In this document: in pieces, positions 1-10,146 of the stretch
How the letters are laid out: each line of letters begins with the position of its first letter
Position numbering within the stretch: position 1 is the stretch's first letter
Assembly: GCA_964035545.1 (NCBI GenBank)
Contig: OZ037769.1
Location: 12,616,633-12,680,632, forward strand
From: Bugula neritina
Taxonomy: Eukaryota; Animalia; Bryozoa
Reading direction: 5' to 3'
DNA: 64,000 nt
Position numbers and translations under genes: made by a program
Notes under the pieces: generated by a model
Database searches by the model: none
What the model was told of the DNA's origin: nothing
Seen by the model: only the letters and a program-made list of their open reading frames with translations

Positions 1-1169
1 CAATTTTTAATAATACCACCAATCGAAAGGCAATTGTCAAGTATAATAGCACAACTCAGCCAGTAGGCCCTGTAAGAGTCTACACCCCACTGATAACACA
101 TTGCTTTTTAATCATGAAACCACAAATGAGTGGGCATTAACCTTTGTCCCCCCCCCCTTAATTTCAATTAAAGTAGTTTTTTGCCATTGGCACACTTGAT
201 ACTACAGGAGAGAGGTGTCCGATTTCTTCAACTTCTCTTTCCTTGACCCCGGCTTTGGCATTGGCTCAATGATATAATTAACATCTGTACTTCTTTCCGA
301 ATGCTTACCGAAAAGCTGCAACAACAATATAAGGATAATAAGCTATAATTTGCTAATAAAAATTCATTTTTCATGCTAGACAACAAAACAAAACTTTCTT
401 AGGCTTTGTTATATTTGGCGCTAATTCTACAATTCATATTGGTATTCCAGGTGCTTTATATTGCAAGACATTCTCTTTTTTATTAGTATCAAAACATTAC
501 GCCATTTTTCTGTCTTCAACAAAACTTTAATGCAACTGGCGTTTTTTGTAGTTTTGCTTAAAGTACAATTTTCTTGATGTTATTTTTAGCTGATTTTTTA
601 TAAACCTGATAAGTAGAATGCATGTCCTGTTGGCTTTTAAAGGTAGTTTAGATGCAGTTGGTGTGGCATTGATTGGTCTATGGTGTCTCTTACGTTCTGT
701 GTTGTGGCTTAGCGACTACTTTTTTTTAACAAACCTGAGTCATTAATCCCAGTTAGTTTCATCTGTAACCTCAATTGTGGAAGCAAAAAAAATTAGTCAT
801 AATTTTACTGGCTCAACATTTAAACATAGTTCAACTACTACAGCCCAGGCTGCTATAAAAACAAGTTGACATCATGTGTTGTGAATAGCTGTATAGTTTA
901 GAAGTTATTTTGCACTGCCTGCCTGTTTTAATTGCTCTATATCTCTACAATAATATGAAATTGTATAACATATATACTCTCATAACATGTAAATGAACCA
1001 TCAAATTACATTATTCCTATAATGTTTATTTTGCTAGCTTATTCAGTTTTGCTCTCAATATTTTTAAGTATTTTTAAACGTTTACCTGCTGAAATGTAGT
1101 CTTCTATTAATTATAATTTTTTATATTTTTGCAGTTAGTTGAAAAGTTTTATTTATTTATATTTTACAG

Positions 1170-1316
1170 GAAGCTTACAAAAATACCGTGGACTCCTCTA
1201 CAGACACTGATTCTGAGGACTTTGTGTTAAATAAGTTAGCCAAAGCTGAAGCCAGTATTCAAATAGTTGAACCTTTGCCTGCTGAACTCTATGATAATCG
1301 ATCAGGAAATTCCTAG
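1170..1316 (+). CDS. Terminal coding exon of a gene starting left of the window (EAYKNTVDSS...YDNRSGNS*), product unknown
   Basis: T-rich tract + TACAG acceptor ending 1169; 49 codons ending in TAG at 1314-1316; AATAAA at about 1774. Confidence 0.55.
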   Translation, partial: EAYKNTVDSSTDTDSEDFVLNKLAKAEASIQIVEPLPAELYDNRSGNS

Positions 1317-1479
1317 CGGGTAGCAGCTAACACCCACTGGATTTATAATACATATCTGTTTTATGATTGCAGTCTAAACTGTGAAACGTGTCTATCCAAT
1401 TACTGTAATGTGGCCGCTTTTTCAAAATGGCTGCACTTGACTCAATCAAAATGTATCTTCTGAAGCTTAACCCTGTCAG

Positions 1480-1595
1480 AATAATTTCTCCATAAGCAGC
1501 TCAGAGTTGGGGGTGACTGAGTGCAATAGTTTGGGGTTTCGGGTTTGGAGTTGGGGGTTCAGAGTTCCAACCTAAACCTCCAGTCAAACTGCTAC
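1480..1595. mobile_element. Partial copy of Mutator-like MITE family A
   Basis: ATAAGCAGCTCAGAGTTGGGGGTGA matches the TIR of copies at 11116, 13436 and 36862. Confidence 0.65.
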
Positions 1596-2329
1596 TCGTT
1601 TTGTTACTAACTATGAGAGTCTCTTTTAACCTTGACCCTGCCAACAACTCATTTTAGAGCAGGTCACAACGTTTAGGTGTTTTCATATCACTTTTGTTTG
1701 AAATTGATTCAATGTTTTAGCATCTCTTGTTTGTTAACTGCTGTATCTGGTGTTCCATCCATTTATTTTAGTCAATAAAACTAATTATGACAACCAACAT
1801 TTGTTTTTCCCTGTATCTTCATGTATCTCACAGGAGAACATGTTTATACTAATGATCTAACCCTGTATAAGGAAAATAGTTTTTTGCTAATACTTTCTTG
1901 GTATAGTGTGTCAAAATATTGTCTCTTTTTATCATTTGAACTTTTGACTGGTGAAAAGGAGCATATTAGTCCATTAGCACTTGACAAAGGTAGCCTAGTA
2001 GGTATAAATCCGGGTCCACATTCTTAGATTTCCTCTATACCTGCTCATAAGAAACATTTTGAGGTTATTTTAGGCACAGTGGTAATAAAACGTACCCACA
2101 TATTGACTAAATATGTATAGTCTTGTGTTACACTAAATCTGAGCCTCTTTTAAACAATTTTTTGAAACTTATATAAGCATTAGTTTGAACCAATCAAAAG
2201 GTTTAAATGATTTCAAAACTTACATAACTAGCAGCTCGGTTTTATGGTTTTTCACTGAATAAAAGCTGCATGTATATATACAACCATTTTATGACAGCGA
2301 TCTGCCCGCACCATTACTCATAATAATAG

Positions 2330-2770
2330 GAAGTAGGTAATAAAAAACCCTCCTCCAATGAAATCAGCTGCCGAAGAACATTTCAAGAGCATGGTTCATT
2401 TGCTTGGCGATAATGGGCGGAAGAGCTATATTTAGCTATATGGCAATGATTACCTTTTTCATGGTCACAGCTACTGCCCCCTGACAGTTCCTATATACTT
2501 AAACTAATAGTTTAGCTTTACCAGGAACTTTGAAATACATTCAGTGCCAGCATGGTGCCTGAATGTCTTGGGAATAGTATAGTTATAACTTGTTATACAA
2601 TCAAATTTAATGCCAATTGACGTTATAAAACCCGACATCTTTGGCATGTCTGACCATATCGAAAATTGCTAGACCTGAATCATAGATGCAACACCAGGTG
2701 ATGGGGGTCAATATCGAGTGCCAATGTAAAAAGGTATTGGAGCTGGTTTTTTTACTAATTATTATAATGC
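2330..2770. mobile_element. Old degenerate inverted-repeat element (MITE-like)
   Basis: TAAAAAACCCTCCTCCAAT (about 2341) mirrors ATTGGAGCTGGTTTTTTTA (about 2736-2754). Confidence 0.35.
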
Positions 2771-3416
2771 AACAAGTTTTGTTTTAGACAAAGTACTTTT
2801 GGAGTCTTTACCAATTTGTTCCCATCAATTTAATATAGGAGGTAAAATGTTTATGAGTTTGTAAAATAACCTAAAACTACTAATCATTCACTTTAAAGTT
2901 TTTTTAAATGGATATTCTAATTTTAGCTGTGATTTCAGCCATAAAGGAGACATATTTTACAGCTTGCATTCCTGCGACTTTTTCCTTATTATTATAGTAA
3001 TTACCAAGATTATGTTTTTAGTCAACAGCTTTTCACTTATTATAGATCATACTAAATCTTAACTTGGTGTATGCGTAAAGGAGCAAATATAGATAAATGT
3101 GCTTTAAATAAATCATAAATAAAAAAATATATCAATGTTATATATTATAGACCCATCCATAAAAACAATGATGTTTTATATTGGAGTGAAATGATGATTT
3201 TGTAATATTATAGGATATAAATATTAAAAATAGTAGGCAACCTGTCACAAAAATGTTAAACTCATTTATTCTGTACCAAAAATAGCAAAATGTGATCTAA
3301 TATGATGGGTCAACAAGATTTTAAAATGGAAGATAGGCTGATTTAACTGAACAGTCTGTGTATAATGAAAAATCACCAATAAACAACAAAAAGCGCCTGT
3401 TCTTCTTCTAAAAAAA

Positions 3417-3628
3417 GACTCACACAAGTTTATAGTTGCTATTCCTGTGAGAAACTCTTGATGGAAAGGGTTTATGTTAAAGCGGGCTAAGGACTTATTT
3501 AAATAAGGCACAGGAAAAATTATGACTGGATGCTCTTTCCAACATCACCAATGGTCTTTTGTCGGGGTTCGAACCCATGACCTCGTGTTTACTAGGCAAA
3601 TGTTCTAACCCCCAGACCACGGCTGTTC
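3417..3628 (-). mobile_element. tRNA-derived SINE family 1 (about 210 bp)
   Basis: Minus-strand A/B boxes (GTGGTCTGGGGG, GGTTCGAACCC) and a body shared with six other copies in the window. Confidence 0.85.
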
Positions 3629-3740
3629 TTTTTTAAGAGTAATGTATTTAATTAGTTCTAATCAAAACTATAAATTAGTTATTTTAATTAACATAATGAA
3701 ATTGCCGACTAATTTATTTAAGTCATTTAGCTAGAACATA

Positions 3741-4013
3741 TATCATCATCATCTTGCTGTCTGTCTAGTCCGACTATGACTTCTGGTGTATCATTTGTCT
3801 CCATTTGGGTCTGTCAAGTGACAGCATTTGCCATTTGCCGAGAGATATTCCCTTGCCTTTAAGGTTGCATTTAATGGTATCTTTGTAACGGAGCCTCGGT
3901 CTGCCAATGTCACGGGAGCCTTCTGTTAGCTGTGAGTATAAAACCTGTTTTTGGATCCTGGTGTTGTCTAATCTGTTGATATGTCCGGCCCATATATAAA
4001 CCAGCCTAAACAA
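3741..4013 (-). mobile_element. 5'-truncated RTE-clade LINE, 3' end
   Basis: WAGHINRLD...KQVLYSQL.EGSR.IGRPRLRYKD...W....DR..WR is the typical RTE ORF C-terminus; followed by a (GAT)n tail. Confidence 0.85.
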
Positions 4014-4693
4014 TTATTTCGTAAGCATTTTTTCCCAGTTTTCAATCATATCATGTAATAGTACTATAATAAACTCTTGAAAGCAAACATTTATGTTGCA
4101 TAGTATTTTTGTTGCATGCGTCTAATGATAACTACTGAGGTTATGGACTATAATGTAGCATGAGCTTCAAGCATGCAGTCAAACGAAAAGTTAAAATACG
4201 ACTAAGCAAAGACCTATACTTGCAAAATGCAACTGAAACAAGCTAAAACAATAATTTTTCATAGAATGGAATTCTATAGAATTATATTAGCATTCTTTAT
4301 AGACTATATGTGCTTCTAATGTTATGTATATGATGCATTGAGATTCAAATAAAATATTACTGCAGAGGTCAGGCTATTCCTCATCAAATGTTAATATGCA
4401 AAATAAAAACTTATTATCCACATTTTCTATTGTTGCTTTAATTCTGATAATATTGTTTTGCTGTTATATATATAAATACTAACCAGGATATGCGCTTCTC
4501 ATGCTTTGAGAAATTTTACATATTTGGTTGAACAACACATGCAATCTTATTGTATATCAAAATCCTGTTTTCCATTCTGGCAACACTGCCAATCTAGTAT
4601 AGATGAACTTGGGACATTTTTTATAAAATAAAAAGTATATAAGAAAGAGATAGGAACTCTCTTTCTATACATTGGTTAGCCTGTTTAGTCACC

Positions 4694-6848
4694 ATGTCTG
4701 TTTACATGTTCCTGATCGTCTTTATCGTTATGGGTGATCAAATTACAGCCTGCTTGCCAACACCGACGGCAGCGAAGGCAGCAAGAGCGAAAACATCACC
4801 AACATTGAAAACATCAGCAAAAGATGATTTGGCTTTACTGGAGTCTATTCCACACGAGGAAACAAGAACCAGGTATAAATCTATAGTTAAATAAGCTGTT
4901 GGGGTGTCTGTTTCTAGATAATACGTTATTCTATCACAGTTGCAACTTTGGGGAATGTTTTGTTTAAATGTACTTTTAGCTTGCAACAGAGCTATTGCAC
5001 TTTATATAACTAAGAATACAATTATTACTATAAAGAAGTTCAAACTTGTGTATAAAATATTATAGTGATGTCAATCTCGGGAATTGCATCAACATAAAAT
5101 AGATGATTGCTGTGTCACTTATCAAGAGTCTAGGATAGTTTGGAGAGCAGCTTTGGAGTAAAATACTATTTTACTAAAATACTATACGGTTCAATACATA
5201 AATATGTTTGATTGGTGCGTAAGCTAATTTCATAAAGTTACTATAAGATCTCATGTGGTAATGATTTCATGGAAGTATAATAAAAATTTGTATAACCCAA
5301 CTAAATAATAATGACTTGCTCATTGTCTTTTTTATCTTTTCCTAAAGCTGTACATGCACAGCTGTTCATTGGAGCCAAATAGTAAAAAAGTAATATTAAT
5401 TTCCTAATGTGAAGTACTTGATATATAAGAAAAAAACCTATAATTTAAAATTTAACTTTAGTTTAAAATTGTTAGATTTTATTAAAATAGCTATAAAACA
5501 ATTTGCAAGAAACTGAAAGTTGCGTGAATAAAAATTGTTTGAAAAGATATACGTTTTAGTGCTAGCAAAACTGAAATATATATAGTAGTCTATTATACGC
5601 TTTTACCCTTTTTTTACAGAGCAAGTATTACTTAAATATATTATTGCTTTTATAGTGCTTATATTATTATATAAAATTAAATTAATGGAATGAGAATGTA
5701 AATTATAGATTGAAAAATTATAATTTGATCACAAATACTTTTTTGCAAATAATATACAATATAAAACACACAACCATAAATGAATAACTACTCCAGAAAG
5801 AGAAAATAATTAAATAGCATTACGGTTTATTAATTTTACACAGGATTGATCATTCTAGAACTCAGTTGCAGTAAACTTGTCTTGTGTAATACACATGTCA
5901 TCAACTGGTGAAAATATTAAATCAGACTTGGTAATGCCTCCTATCAGTTTATCTACCTGGGTTTTATTTACAAAATGCTTATCAACTCACTATAATATGA
6001 CAAATCATCCTCCATAACTCAACATTGAAATGAAACATATATTAAATGTCTGCAGTTATTTTCACCAGTTTGATTTATTGCATTTTATTTTGTAGAGAAC
6101 CAAGAAAAAATCCGTTTACCGGCTTTGACTATTGTGAGGAAGGGCAGACTTCATGCTGCCTCCACCCATTTGCTAAAAGGGCCTCAGAACTTGAGCTACC
6201 TTATGTTTTTCCTCAAATCATACCTCTCAACTACTGCCAAGGGCACTGTAAGTTCTTGCAACATAAAGGATGTTCTGTCTATAAAATTGCAGTATTGATA
6301 AATTCTACTTTTATATTTTTATCTGAAAAATTATTGCCTTCACTGGGGTTCGAACCCGAGACTTCCGGCTTGCAAGCAAGTGTGCTAACCATTACACCAC
6401 GGGAACTACTGGGAAAGCACGACACTACACCATCGTTATTCAGCTACACGTCTCTCACTGATGTGCTATAATCTCGTGTCGTTGTCTCCTCTGAGACTCA
6501 AACCTCAGGCTTAACCAACTAGCTTAAGTGAGCTTGCTAACCGCTACACTATATAAAGTCTACTAAAGAACCTCAAAGCTACAGTCTGTTTACTATTAAA
6601 TATATTAAATTTTCACAGAACTTTTTTTGTTAAATTATCTCTAAAAACAATGCCCGGCATTATTAGATGTCATGTGTTTAACAGGTCGCTTAGAAGGCAG
6701 CGTTCATTCTCAGCTGCTGAGCAAGGACTCCTCTTGCTGCCACGCCACAGAGTTTGAGCCTATCATGGTTACGTACTACGACGGCAACGGTGTACTGCAA
6801 TCAGAGTGGCTGGATGGAGCTGTCGCAACCAAATGTGCATGTTCATAG
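4694..6848 (+). CDS. Compact TGF-beta superfamily ligand, about 164 aa; exons 4694-4872, 6096-6247, 6685-6848
   Basis: Hydrophobic signal peptide; phase-compatible GT-AG introns; C-x6-CC...CQGHC...CC...CAC-S* nine-cysteine knot pattern. Confidence 0.85.
6334..6407 (-). pseudogene. tRNA-like element family 2 (tRNA pseudogene or SINE head, TTGCAA loop)
   Basis: GTGGTGTAATGG A box and GGTTCGAACCC B box; poor stems; related copies at 28067 and 32022. Confidence 0.65.
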
Positions 6849-8176
6849 ATAATCCTTGGTTATACAATGAAGGTGGTTGCGGACAATATTTTCGCTATAT
6901 AATTATAATTATATATAAATAATTATAAATATATAATAATTATAATATTATTATGAAAAAATATCAACTATTGTTTATGTTGTTTGAATGAATAAATATA
7001 AGAAGTTTCTATAAATGATAATATAAATAATTCCTATTTCTTGGTTTTTTATACAGAAATGCTTATCTTCCAGATGTTGTGTTTATTTGGGAAACTTATT
7101 GTCTCAACCGCTATCTGTTTAAGCTAGAGAACAACATGAGTAATAAAAGGAGCTAAAAATACTATTTCTTAGAAATTAAAGGTTTATCTTGTATACTTTT
7201 TTTACTAACAAAGGGATGTGCGTATCATTCCCTTTAATTACCTGAAATATCACTACTTGGATTTGCTTTGCAATTCAAACTTGTGATATTTTTAATCAAC
7301 ATATATAAAAATATCTGCTTATATATTTAGCAAATACAATAATTTATACAAATACAATATAATGAGCTTACCATGATAGATAATAGCTAATAGCTAATAG
7401 TCCTTATTGCTGTATCTAATGCTTTTTACAGAAGTCTGTTAGAAATCTTAGCTTAGGCATTCTACTGGCAATATATACTTAGGCATGTACTATATGCCCA
7501 TATTTATGATGCTGTTATGGTAAAATCAACACATATACCTATAATAGTTTCTATAATACAGTCTTTACATCAGCCACCTCATTGGCTGAACCTTTCTATA
7601 TAATACACATAAAGTCATTAATTAAAAGTCACATAATTGAAAGCAATAATATTTTTCTGATTTGTTGCACCTGCTTGATTTCAACAACTAGGAAGTTATT
7701 CTTATAAAACATTTACATTTATTGAAATGGCATTTACTGCAGCACAAAACAACAGAATAGATTACACTAAAATAGCTGGCTGATGCTGCCTGTCACCATG
7801 TTTGGGGTGATGTTTGTCATGCTGTCCTGTTTTTGCTGCTGTTAAACCAAGCGTTCCCACACCTTTACTTTTATCTCAGTGTCTTTCATTTTATTTTTCA
7901 GCTAAAAATAGAGCTTCAATAAAAAATGTGTCAGAAGATAACTTCTTAAATTTATATTTTGCTGATTCTACTGGGCAAACTATTGTTACAGTACACAAAC
8001 TATATCTATTAATTGTTACACAACCATGTACATGATGTGTTACTGCAATATATTCTATAAAATTCTTAAATCGCTTAATTCTTAAACAGTAATTATTTTT
8101 ATAATATTATTATTTTTTATTATTATTTATTATAAATTTAGAATTTTTTACGGAAGTTTCACACCATAAGAAGTAT

Positions 8177-10146
8177 TCAGAGAGTATTAACACCCATGCC
8201 GACAGTCATAACGTTCCCATAACATTTTCCAGGGGCTTTATTCTGAAACCCTTTCTATTATTATACTCAACAAGCACACAACTACAAATCACACTATAAC
8301 CTCAAGTATAATTACCATATCGTAGGCAGCATGAAACAACTGCTGCTGCTCCTTGCCATCTTTCCCAATTGGTTTATAAGTGTGGAGCTTCTTATTAATC
8401 TCTTCATATTTCTTACGGATGTCCTTCATTATTTTTTTGATTGGAGTTCGAGTTGGCCTTCTGCCAAAAATATCCTCCAGGTGTTTCCTGAAACCCTCCA
8501 CATGTGGGCCATAGGCTGAGCTGTATATTATGTATACGATGTATATTATGTATATTATGTATTATGTATACTATGTATATTATGTATACTATGTATACAT
8601 GTATATTATGTATATTTTATTATATATTTTAACACATGCAAGTTTAAAGGATTGCTCTATCTTGTCTAATAAATGGCCATTTAGGTCAAACACACATAAT
8701 ATTGTGTTTTTCTAAGCATGCATTGACAAAAAGCATTTGACCAAAGGTAGAAAAAGTTAGTTGAAGTTGAGGGTGTAGATTGGTAACAGCCAAAACGCCG
8801 ATTTTGAAATGAGCTGGGAAATGTGACGTAACAGCGCCAGCATTCCTGCTGGTCACGTGACTATACAAATGAATAACTATAGAAATATGACTGTGAGATG
8901 TGATCTTTCAGCTCGAAATTTGTATATTCATAGAAGTGCAAATGTGAATTATCTCAATCTATAGTTTTTTGACATTTTAAATAACATGTATGTGATAACA
9001 TTAGGCCATATTTTGCTTGTAAGCATAGAAAAAAGCATTGCAAAAACATGCATTCTTTAGGATGAATGCCTGCGATCGATCTAAACTAGGTCAGATTGTG
9101 CAATATTACGGGCACACCAAAGCTGACCTATATAGCGCACTGTAACTGCTTGAGCGTTATTGGTTGATGTTGTGCTCAGCAACCTTGAATACTAGCGTTA
9201 TAGTTAGCACGTGCAGCATAGTTACTGGCGTTCACACGTCACGTATTAGGCTATTCTTTTTCATGGCTGAAAATTTTACCTCCCTCAAAATTGGAATTTT
9301 GAAAAGCTGTTTTCTAGGCACATATCCCTTTGCAAAGTCACAATTGTTTGCATACACATTAGATTATAGTTCATAATTATAATGTGATTGTAATAAACTA
9401 AGATTGAGCAATCCTTTAAATGAGTTTATTGATCTATAATCATCAGTGCTCTCAACACAAGTAGTGCGTTATTATATATATATTATATTATATTATATAT
9501 ATATATATATATATGCAAGTTATCTATGTTGTAGAAGATTAGTCAATGTCTTACACAACAGCTTCAGTCTCATCAGCATTGCTGCCGTCAGCAGCTAGCT
9601 TAGCATCCTGGGACAGTTTCTCAGCCCATTCTCTCAGATCAGTCTGAGCTTTCCTGAAGTTTGAGTGCAACTAAAACATATCCAGTTATATAACACAACT
9701 TAAGTGAACAAAAAGGTATATTTCATCACTTTCTATATGGAAATAAACCATGCAACAGAACACCATTTTCTCCTTAATAAGTTATTGCAGTTATACATTG
9801 CCTATAGTTTATACACGGTCTTGTATAGACAAAAGTAAATAGTATTGTGCTTTATTGTGTTTAGAGTTCATAGTTGTGCACAGAGGTCCAAAATAATTAG
9901 AGTTTAATTCAAACAATCAAATGGTTTAATTCTTTATTATAATAAACAAGATGCAAATGGTTATAAATCTTAGCCTCCAGCTACTGGCTTTAGGTTAGAG
10001 CTGTTAAACAAATCACCATAGCAACAATGTTGTTATTCTTTTCATCTTTACTAACCACCAATACTTGGAATTATCCCCCTCTACATTGCTTCACTTAGTA
10101 CTTACCGCCCAGACAGCGTGTATTAAGCAAGTGTCAAGACATCTCA
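8177..10146 (-). CDS. Uncharacterised protein, 5' end not found; exons 10146-10106, 9670-9555, 8520-8316, 8254(or 8242)-8177
   Basis: Four GT-AG exons with compatible phases join into an open frame of about 145 aa; no recognisable domain. Confidence 0.5.
8522..8625. repeat. (TATGTATAY)n minisatellite
   Basis: Visible tandem array of 9-14 bp units. Confidence 0.85.
8648..9415. mobile_element. Non-autonomous DNA transposon with TTAA TSD (Kolobok-like)
   Basis: TTAA|AGGATTGCTCTATCTT ... AAGATTGAGCAATCCT|TTAA. Confidence 0.75.

Follow-up and report, generated by a model that had tools for sequence, protein, structure and literature searches.

The window analysed here (the whole stretch of 64 000 nucleotides, C5:12616633-12680632, in a host genome of 216 Mb from a Bugula-type bryozoan) contains a three-exon gene that, on the sequence evidence, is real and unusual. 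It is probably an intact gene that selection maintains, encoding a very small secreted TGF-β-family precursor that is processed to a ligand acting non-canonically. We refer to the predicted product as the mini ligand. Its mature part has the nine cysteines of the TGF-β/activin/myostatin group, a shortened heel and almost nothing in front of it that resembles a prodomain.

Gene structure

The gene is on the plus strand. Its exons total 495 nt (164 codons plus the stop), and the introns have GT...AG ends and are in phases 2 and 1. This model was obtained by direct reading of the sequence, and it agrees exactly with an earlier sequence-only reading, which had proposed three exons and about 164 aa at 4694-6848. 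The features are listed below, with a slash marking exon boundaries.

4636..4643, plus strand: TATA-box-like TATATAAG, some 50 nt before the ATG, retained amid diverging flanks in the C5, C9 and GenBank copies
4694-4872, plus strand: exon 1, ATG at 4694, donor AG/GTATAA, ending in phase 2 (AG/)
4873..6095, plus strand: intron 1, GT...AG, 1223 nt
6096-6247, plus strand: exon 2, acceptor ttttgtag/, donor CACT/GTAAGT, ending in phase 1 (T/)
6248..6684, plus strand: intron 2, GTAAGT...AG, 437 nt, holding a C5-specific tRNA-like insertion
6685-6848, plus strand: exon 3, acceptor aacag/, stop TAG at 6846-6848

Exon 1 encodes a signal peptide, predicted to occupy approximately residues 1-19 (hydrophobic core FLIVFIVM, boundary ...ITA/C), and then a pro-segment rich in A, K, T, S and P. 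Exon 2 completes R60 and encodes E-P-R, the N-terminal arm and finger 1 as far as the C-Q-G-H of the knot. The remainder, namely the last cysteine of CxGxC, the short heel, the second CC pair (interchain plus knot cysteine), finger 2 and the terminal C-A-C-S, is in exon 3. Two codons are split. The R60 codon (AG/A) is interrupted by intron 1 and followed by E61-P62-R63, such that R-E-P-R spans the exon 1/2 junction, and the final CxGxC cysteine (T/GT) is interrupted by intron 2.

R-E-P-R is a predicted furin-type R-x-x-R site, with the cut after R63 (6103-6105). A furin site with Pro at P2 and Lys at P1' is sub-optimal. Between the signal peptide and the mature part, where related precursors carry a prodomain of 200 residues or more, there is a low-complexity pro-segment of about 44 aa, in line with the pro-region of about 45 residues, ending in R-E-P-R across the exon junction, that had been read from the sequence earlier. 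The mature part, K64-S164 (101 aa), has the arrangement C-x6-CC-x25-CxGxC-x16-CC-x31-CxC-S. We note that a tenth cysteine, C20 (4751-4753), lies just past the predicted signal-peptide cleavage site (..ITA/C-L-P-T-P) and is found without exception in the copies that have exon 1. Possibly it is unpaired and serves to tether or dimerise the pro-segment; otherwise it may belong to the signal peptide.

The element TATATAAG is the likely core promoter. Identity between the C5 copy and a duplicate on C9 (see below) is 90-92 % over 4601-4750 and 59-76 % farther upstream, over 4251-4500.

Copies of the gene and evidence for selection

Searching the host genome with KAF6021565.1, a GenBank protein of the same family, revealed exactly two three-exon loci, the one in the window on C5 and another on C9. 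Apart from about 15 ordinary TGF_beta domains, a Pfam search found two weak matches, one at each of these loci. Both loci are within a segmental duplication shared by two chromosome-scale contigs. It covers at least 87-9479 of the window, extends more than 3 kb upstream of it (C5:12613322-12616618) and is matched by C9:6188230-6201999, making it at least about 13 kb long. Within the duplicated unit, the mini-ligand gene is accompanied by the 3' part of a DnaJ-like gene and, downstream, by a gene on the minus strand.

The two copies share 80-86 % identity in non-coding sequence and 93-97 % in the exons. Their coding regions differ by 20 synonymous and 6 non-synonymous substitutions (dS 0.21, dN 0.016, dN/dS 0.078, Fisher p 2e-9). 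Mismatches in the three exons cluster at one codon position, among them 7 of 9 in exon 2 and all 5 across exon 3. The coding differences in exon 3 are synonymous (3 by codon count), and the protein that it encodes is identical in the two copies. The central part of intron 1 (about 5060-6057) is not represented in the C9 copy, where intron 1 is much shorter and is largely filled by a long CA/TG microsatellite (L016, 587-948), to which the intron 1 sequence in C5 is unrelated.

Three further copies were found in Bugula sequences, one in GenBank contig VXIV02003003.1 and two in JGI contigs. All five copies retain the open frame, the splice sites, REPR, the nine cysteines and the stop, and REPR is kept despite synonymous changes within it. 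Substitutions in the recurring exons are biased towards third codon positions. Across the five distinct, intact copies, pairwise omega for exons 2 and 3 is 0.05-0.68, mostly 0.2-0.35. The sequence-only reading had named a neutral dN/dS, combined with a lack of expression, as grounds for doubting the gene, and the values are instead well below 1 in these comparisons, including that of C5 with C9. Judged from these alignments, the gene is intact and is kept by selection.

In VXIV02003003.1 a unit of about 12.8 kb, the counterpart of the C5/C9 duplication, is tandemly repeated. This contig is only about 76-87 % identical to both C5 and C9 at the nucleotide level, and no match above about 90 % identity to it was found in the host genome. 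Hence, either the host lineage differs from that represented by GCA_010799875.2 or the GenBank locus is a further paralogue. One of the JGI copies (3300002729) is a mosaic: the finger 1 part of its exon 2 (ELELPYVFPQIIP) is of the C5/C9 type and its exon 3 of the GenBank type, a pattern that points to recombination or gene conversion between members of the family.

Two further segments distinguish the C5 copy. About 700 nt upstream of the gene, a 79-aa ORF on the minus strand (3774-4013) is similar to the C-terminal tail of a protein from non-LTR retrotransposons, and as nothing corresponding to 3744-3990 occurs in the C9 or GenBank copies, this looks like a C5-specific insertion. In intron 2, a tRNA-like element on the minus strand (6335-6406) scored 23.3 bits against the Rfam tRNA model, below the threshold of 29 bits, and ARAGORN found no tRNA gene at this position. 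As neither the C9 nor the GenBank copy contains 6292-6436, the element is probably an insertion of a tRNA-derived SINE or pseudogene.

Family membership and predicted fold

The curated cut-off for the Pfam TGF_beta family (PF00019) is 27 bits. Exon 3 of the window copy alone scored 26.9 bits (E 9e-6, profile positions 65-104), and neither exon 1 alone nor exon 2 alone had a Pfam match. The full-domain Pfam and structure results were obtained with KAF6021565.1 (154 aa, about 85 % identical) as a full-length stand-in, and apply to that protein. It matched TGF_beta with 41.8 bits over profile positions 2-104. Its best sequence matches in the PDB were GDF8 and GDF11 (E 2.6e-5 to 5e-5), and all nine cysteines align with those of GDF8. 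The cystine-knot cysteines with CxGxC, the C-terminal CxC and the interchain cysteine are present and conserved in the five copies, all of which also have the R60-E-P-R63 convertase site upstream of the mature domain. The nine-cysteine pattern of the activin/TGF-β/myostatin type that the sequence-only reading described is thus supported by the cysteine spacing, read directly, and by these PDB matches.

An AlphaFold2 model of KAF6021565.1 was built on an alignment of 19 rows that included the other ligands of the host genome. Over the mature domain (residues 56-154) pLDDT is 66-90, and the heel helix, which lies between the knot and the second CC, is reduced to six residues (107-112). The best 50 Foldseek matches listed for this model all belong to the TGF-β family (probability 1.00), and there were 140 matches at E<=0.001. 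Among the matches listed, the tightest superposition was with the heel-deleted engineered protein mmTGF-β2 (5tx4_B, TM 0.78, rmsd 2.5 Å; 5tx2_A, TM 0.74; rmsd range of the pair 2.5-2.7 Å). The heel spacer is 16 residues long in the mini ligand versus 22-34 in the other ligands of the host genome. In the alignment, the near-universal Trp-x-x-Trp of finger 1 is replaced, and aromatic residues (Y/F) persist close to the lost Trp positions. A homodimer prediction using two copies of residues 54-154 of KAF6021565.1 gave a score of 0.20 (mark 0.32), which weighs neither way on dimerisation.

The description of the ligand as miniature holds for the precursor. It does not hold for the mature domain, which at 101 aa is only about 10 aa below the usual length, a difference due mostly to the heel helix.

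In a phylogeny of the mature domains, the branch leading to the mini ligand has a length of 5, and its grouping with an activin-like protein from Schistosoma bovis is weak (83/83). By this analysis there is no reliable sister. The host genome also contains divergent nine-cysteine ligands at C4:20921593-20925955 (L006 and L007) and C5:5933251-5933565 (L009), in which the heel spacers are 22-24 residues and Phe replaces the Trp pair. L007 and L009 are the nearest matches to the mini ligand in the genome (28-32 % identity), and L006 and L007 have normal propeptide matches upstream. It is possible, from these sequence features, that the three are relatives of the ancestor of the mini ligand.

Absence of a recognisable prodomain

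No match to TGFb_propeptide (PF00688) was found in exon 1 or in KAF6021565.1 at E<=10. In the whole-genome Pfam search there were 12 matches to this family, every one on C1-C4 and beside another ligand; C5 and C9 had no such match. Residues 1-55 of the AlphaFold2 model of KAF6021565.1 have pLDDT below 50 and are modelled as disordered, with no predicted helix. The features of a latent procomplex of the TGF-β/GDF8 type (alpha-1 helix, latency lasso and arm domain) were not found. These results bear out the earlier claim that the precursor has almost no prodomain.

The pro-segment differs between copies by indels, with a 6-aa insertion in the C9 copy and a deletion in the GenBank copy. It therefore behaves as a linker would, unlike a folded chaperone domain. 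When the whole genome was searched with residues 1-52 of KAF6021565.1, only the C5 and C9 loci were matched.

Extra exons that could supply a prodomain of normal length were also sought, and the sequence gives no sign of additional coding exons upstream. A TAA stop at 4640-4642 is in frame with the ATG, 18 codons upstream of it, and the hydrophobic, signal-like core comes straight after the ATG. The blocks conserved between C5 and C9 in the 4.6 kb upstream show no codon periodicity and carry indels. The GenBank annotation has the same three exons as the model for the window copy.

Distribution and previous records

A phmmer search with exon 3 against 1.84 billion representative proteins recovered one close cluster, from Bugula, and generic family members. 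The cluster includes KAF6021565.1 and KAF6021568.1, each 154 aa and recorded as 'hypothetical protein EB796_020126/EB796_020123 [Bugula neritina]' (UniRef A0A7J7J6B2). The gene family is therefore already deposited in GenBank, as an unnamed hypothetical protein. Outside this cluster, the sole significant match to a true family member was the S. bovis activin-like protein (E 1.3e-4). Hits P0002-P0010 of the exhaustive search with exon 3 were repeat proteins that match a Y-Y-D-G-N-G-like motif and were dismissed as noise. The finger 2 stretch at 6757-6792 (Y-Y-D-G-N-G-V-L-Q-S-E-W) resembles bacterial repeat motifs and produces about eight spurious multi-stretch matches, a trap for automated annotation.

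A word search of proteins with exon 2 (as a 141-aa ORF) found no candidate. The same type of search with KAF6021565.1 found nothing at E<=10, its own cluster being represented by a 58-aa ORF that is outside the length range searched. A metagenome scan with KAF6021565.1 produced 86 pattern matches, none of which was confirmed, and the full-length product of the C5 or C9 copy was not found in the protein collections. As the short exon ORFs of unannotated eukaryote genomes are scarce in such collections, absence from other bryozoans is only weakly indicated. Within the representatives searched, the mini ligand looks specific to the Bugula lineage, as the sequence-only reading had suggested.

A search of one literature library found no paper discussing this gene family, and no description was found of a nine-cysteine ligand of the TGF-β/activin type that has both a pro-segment of about 44 aa and a truncated heel.

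Comparison with known ligands

The mini ligand shares with the nine-cysteine TGF-β/activin/myostatin (GDF8/GDF11) group the pattern C..CC..CxGxC..CC..CxCS, an RxxR site before the mature domain and the monomer fold. However, its pro-region is about 44 aa compared with approximately 230-270 aa in that group and lacks a TGFb_propeptide signal, its heel spacer is 16 residues rather than about 30, WxxW is lost and identity is only 24-30 %. KAF6021565.1 and KAF6021568.1 belong to the same three-exon family (about 85 % amino acid identity, with REPR and the nine cysteines in common) but are annotated from the second Met, and their pro- and N-terminal segments are shorter than those of the window copy.

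The engineered protein mmTGF-β2-7M (PDB 5TX4, 5TX2 and 5TY4) is a domain of about 92-101 residues in which the heel helix is removed or reduced, as it is in the mini ligand, and at 29-30 % identity it gave the best superposition among the Foldseek matches listed. It is man-made and cannot dimerise as it carries C77S, whereas the mini ligand retains the corresponding cysteine. Engineered heel-deleted TGF-β2 binds TGFBR2 but not TGFBR1 and is an inhibitor. According to a 2026 preprint (10.64898/2026.03.23.713733), even an engineered mini TGF-β fails to fold correctly in mammalian cells when no prodomain is provided.

The GDNF-family ligands (e.g. persephin) and fish GSDF resemble the mini ligand in having precursors of about 150-220 aa, and ligands of both types manage with short pro-regions. 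Clusters of proteins of 151-213 aa that contain only TGF_beta also exist in the atlas. The absence of a large prodomain in GDNF-type members argues against a 'canonical precursor' but not against membership of the family. GDNF-family ligands have seven cysteines, compared with nine here, and the match of KAF6021565.1 to neurturin (E 0.097 over residues 66-108) is far poorer than that to GDF8 (E 2.6e-5 over the whole domain). GSDF, which is also an orphan ligand, lacks the Gly of CxGxC that is present in the mini ligand (PMC12989411). No specific sequence relationship of the mini ligand to GDNF-family ligands or GSDF was found.

BMP3, inhibin-alpha and Lefty engage type II receptors or partner subunits but do not productively recruit a type I receptor, and are possible functional analogues of the mini ligand. 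All three have full-length prodomains, Lefty lacks the interchain cysteine, and no sequence affinity of the mini ligand to any of them was found.

Proposed mode of action

The segmental duplication that gave rise to the C5 and C9 copies would have carried the upstream DnaJ-like gene with it. The precursor is expected to enter the ER co-translationally and to be cleaved after REPR by a furin-type convertase. The ligand released could not then be held latent in the canonical, prodomain-dependent way, and the earlier suggestion that it is not latent is plausible on this basis. It would probably be a disulfide-linked dimer, joined via the retained first cysteine of the second CC pair. As the heel helix and the Trp pair, the usual builders of the type I receptor site, are both remodelled, canonical receptor assembly is doubtful; the ligand is unlikely to bring type I and type II receptors together in the standard complex used by BMPs and activins, and would act as a modulator or a non-canonical ligand. 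Since the engineered protein misfolds without a prodomain, the folding of the mini ligand needs explaining. By analogy, it may be intrinsic, as in the short precursors of the GDNF or GSDF type, or borrowed from a partner.

Alternative explanations

Two of the alternatives question the gene itself, and both are considered very improbable. If the gene were mis-modelled, exon 1 would be internal and exons farther upstream would supply a normal prodomain. A pyrimidine-rich stretch containing AG does lie between the upstream stop and the ATG, but the GenBank copy has not kept this candidate acceptor, whereas it has kept the TATA box. The signal-like segment right after the ATG, the upstream in-frame stop, the lack of codon-periodic conservation over 4.6 kb, the lack of a propeptide match on C5 or C9 and the three-exon public annotation all count against it, and from these sequence features it is largely refuted. 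The other is that the gene is a decaying or non-functional duplicate, a pseudogene in waiting. It belongs to a young multicopy family, the copy number differs between assemblies and omega reaches 0.68 in some pairs. However, none of the five copies has lost its open frame, a splice site or any of the nine cysteines, and the C5/C9 omega of 0.078 was obtained at a dS of 0.21. The dN/dS values largely refute decay.

The remaining two accept the gene and differ on what its product does. As the engineered heel-deleted TGF-β2 is an inhibitor that binds TGFBR2 without TGFBR1, a natural antagonist is a serious rival, even if we regard it as unlikely. Such a protein would keep the type II receptor surface but be unable to recruit the type I receptor, and would titrate receptors as BMP3 or mmTGF-β2 does. 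The geometry of the model, which among the Foldseek matches listed is closest to this engineered antagonist, favours it, as do the receptor preference of the design, the heel spacer of 16 rather than 22-34 residues and the replacement of the Trp pair. Against this, the interchain cysteine is kept, unlike in the engineered monomer, and Y/F aromatics are still found near the lost Trp positions. Moreover, antagonism overlaps with the main explanation and does not exclude it. We consider it improbable that the product is instead an obligate heterodimer subunit, which would fold and dimerise in the ER only beside a family member of full length, or beside a distinct protein resembling a prodomain, and borrow the prodomain of its partner, a possibility raised in the sequence-only reading. 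The interchain cysteine is conserved in all copies, and according to the literature prodomains drive both folding and heterodimer formation, but Pfam found no orphan propeptide in the genome and short pro-regions suffice for GDNF-family and GSDF-type ligands. An intact, selected gene for a small secreted precursor, processed to a non-canonically acting ligand, remains the preferred explanation.

Significance

Prodomains are held to be necessary for the folding, dimerisation, latency and targeting of TGF-β-family ligands. A nine-cysteine ligand that is under selection and has essentially no prodomain and a truncated type I receptor site would test how far the prodomain and the wrist are dispensable. 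More speculatively, and with rather low probability, the mini ligand might be a natural counterpart of the engineered mini TGF-β, one that folds and is secreted without a prodomain chaperone and, lacking the heel helix and WxxW, acts as a receptor-titrating antagonist or uses a non-canonical receptor. Its gene family would be a young one whose copy number is in flux within Bugula. The protein might also serve as a template in the design of small ligand antagonists. For bryozoans, in which the TGF-β toolkit is poorly known, the mini ligand would add a lineage-specific element.
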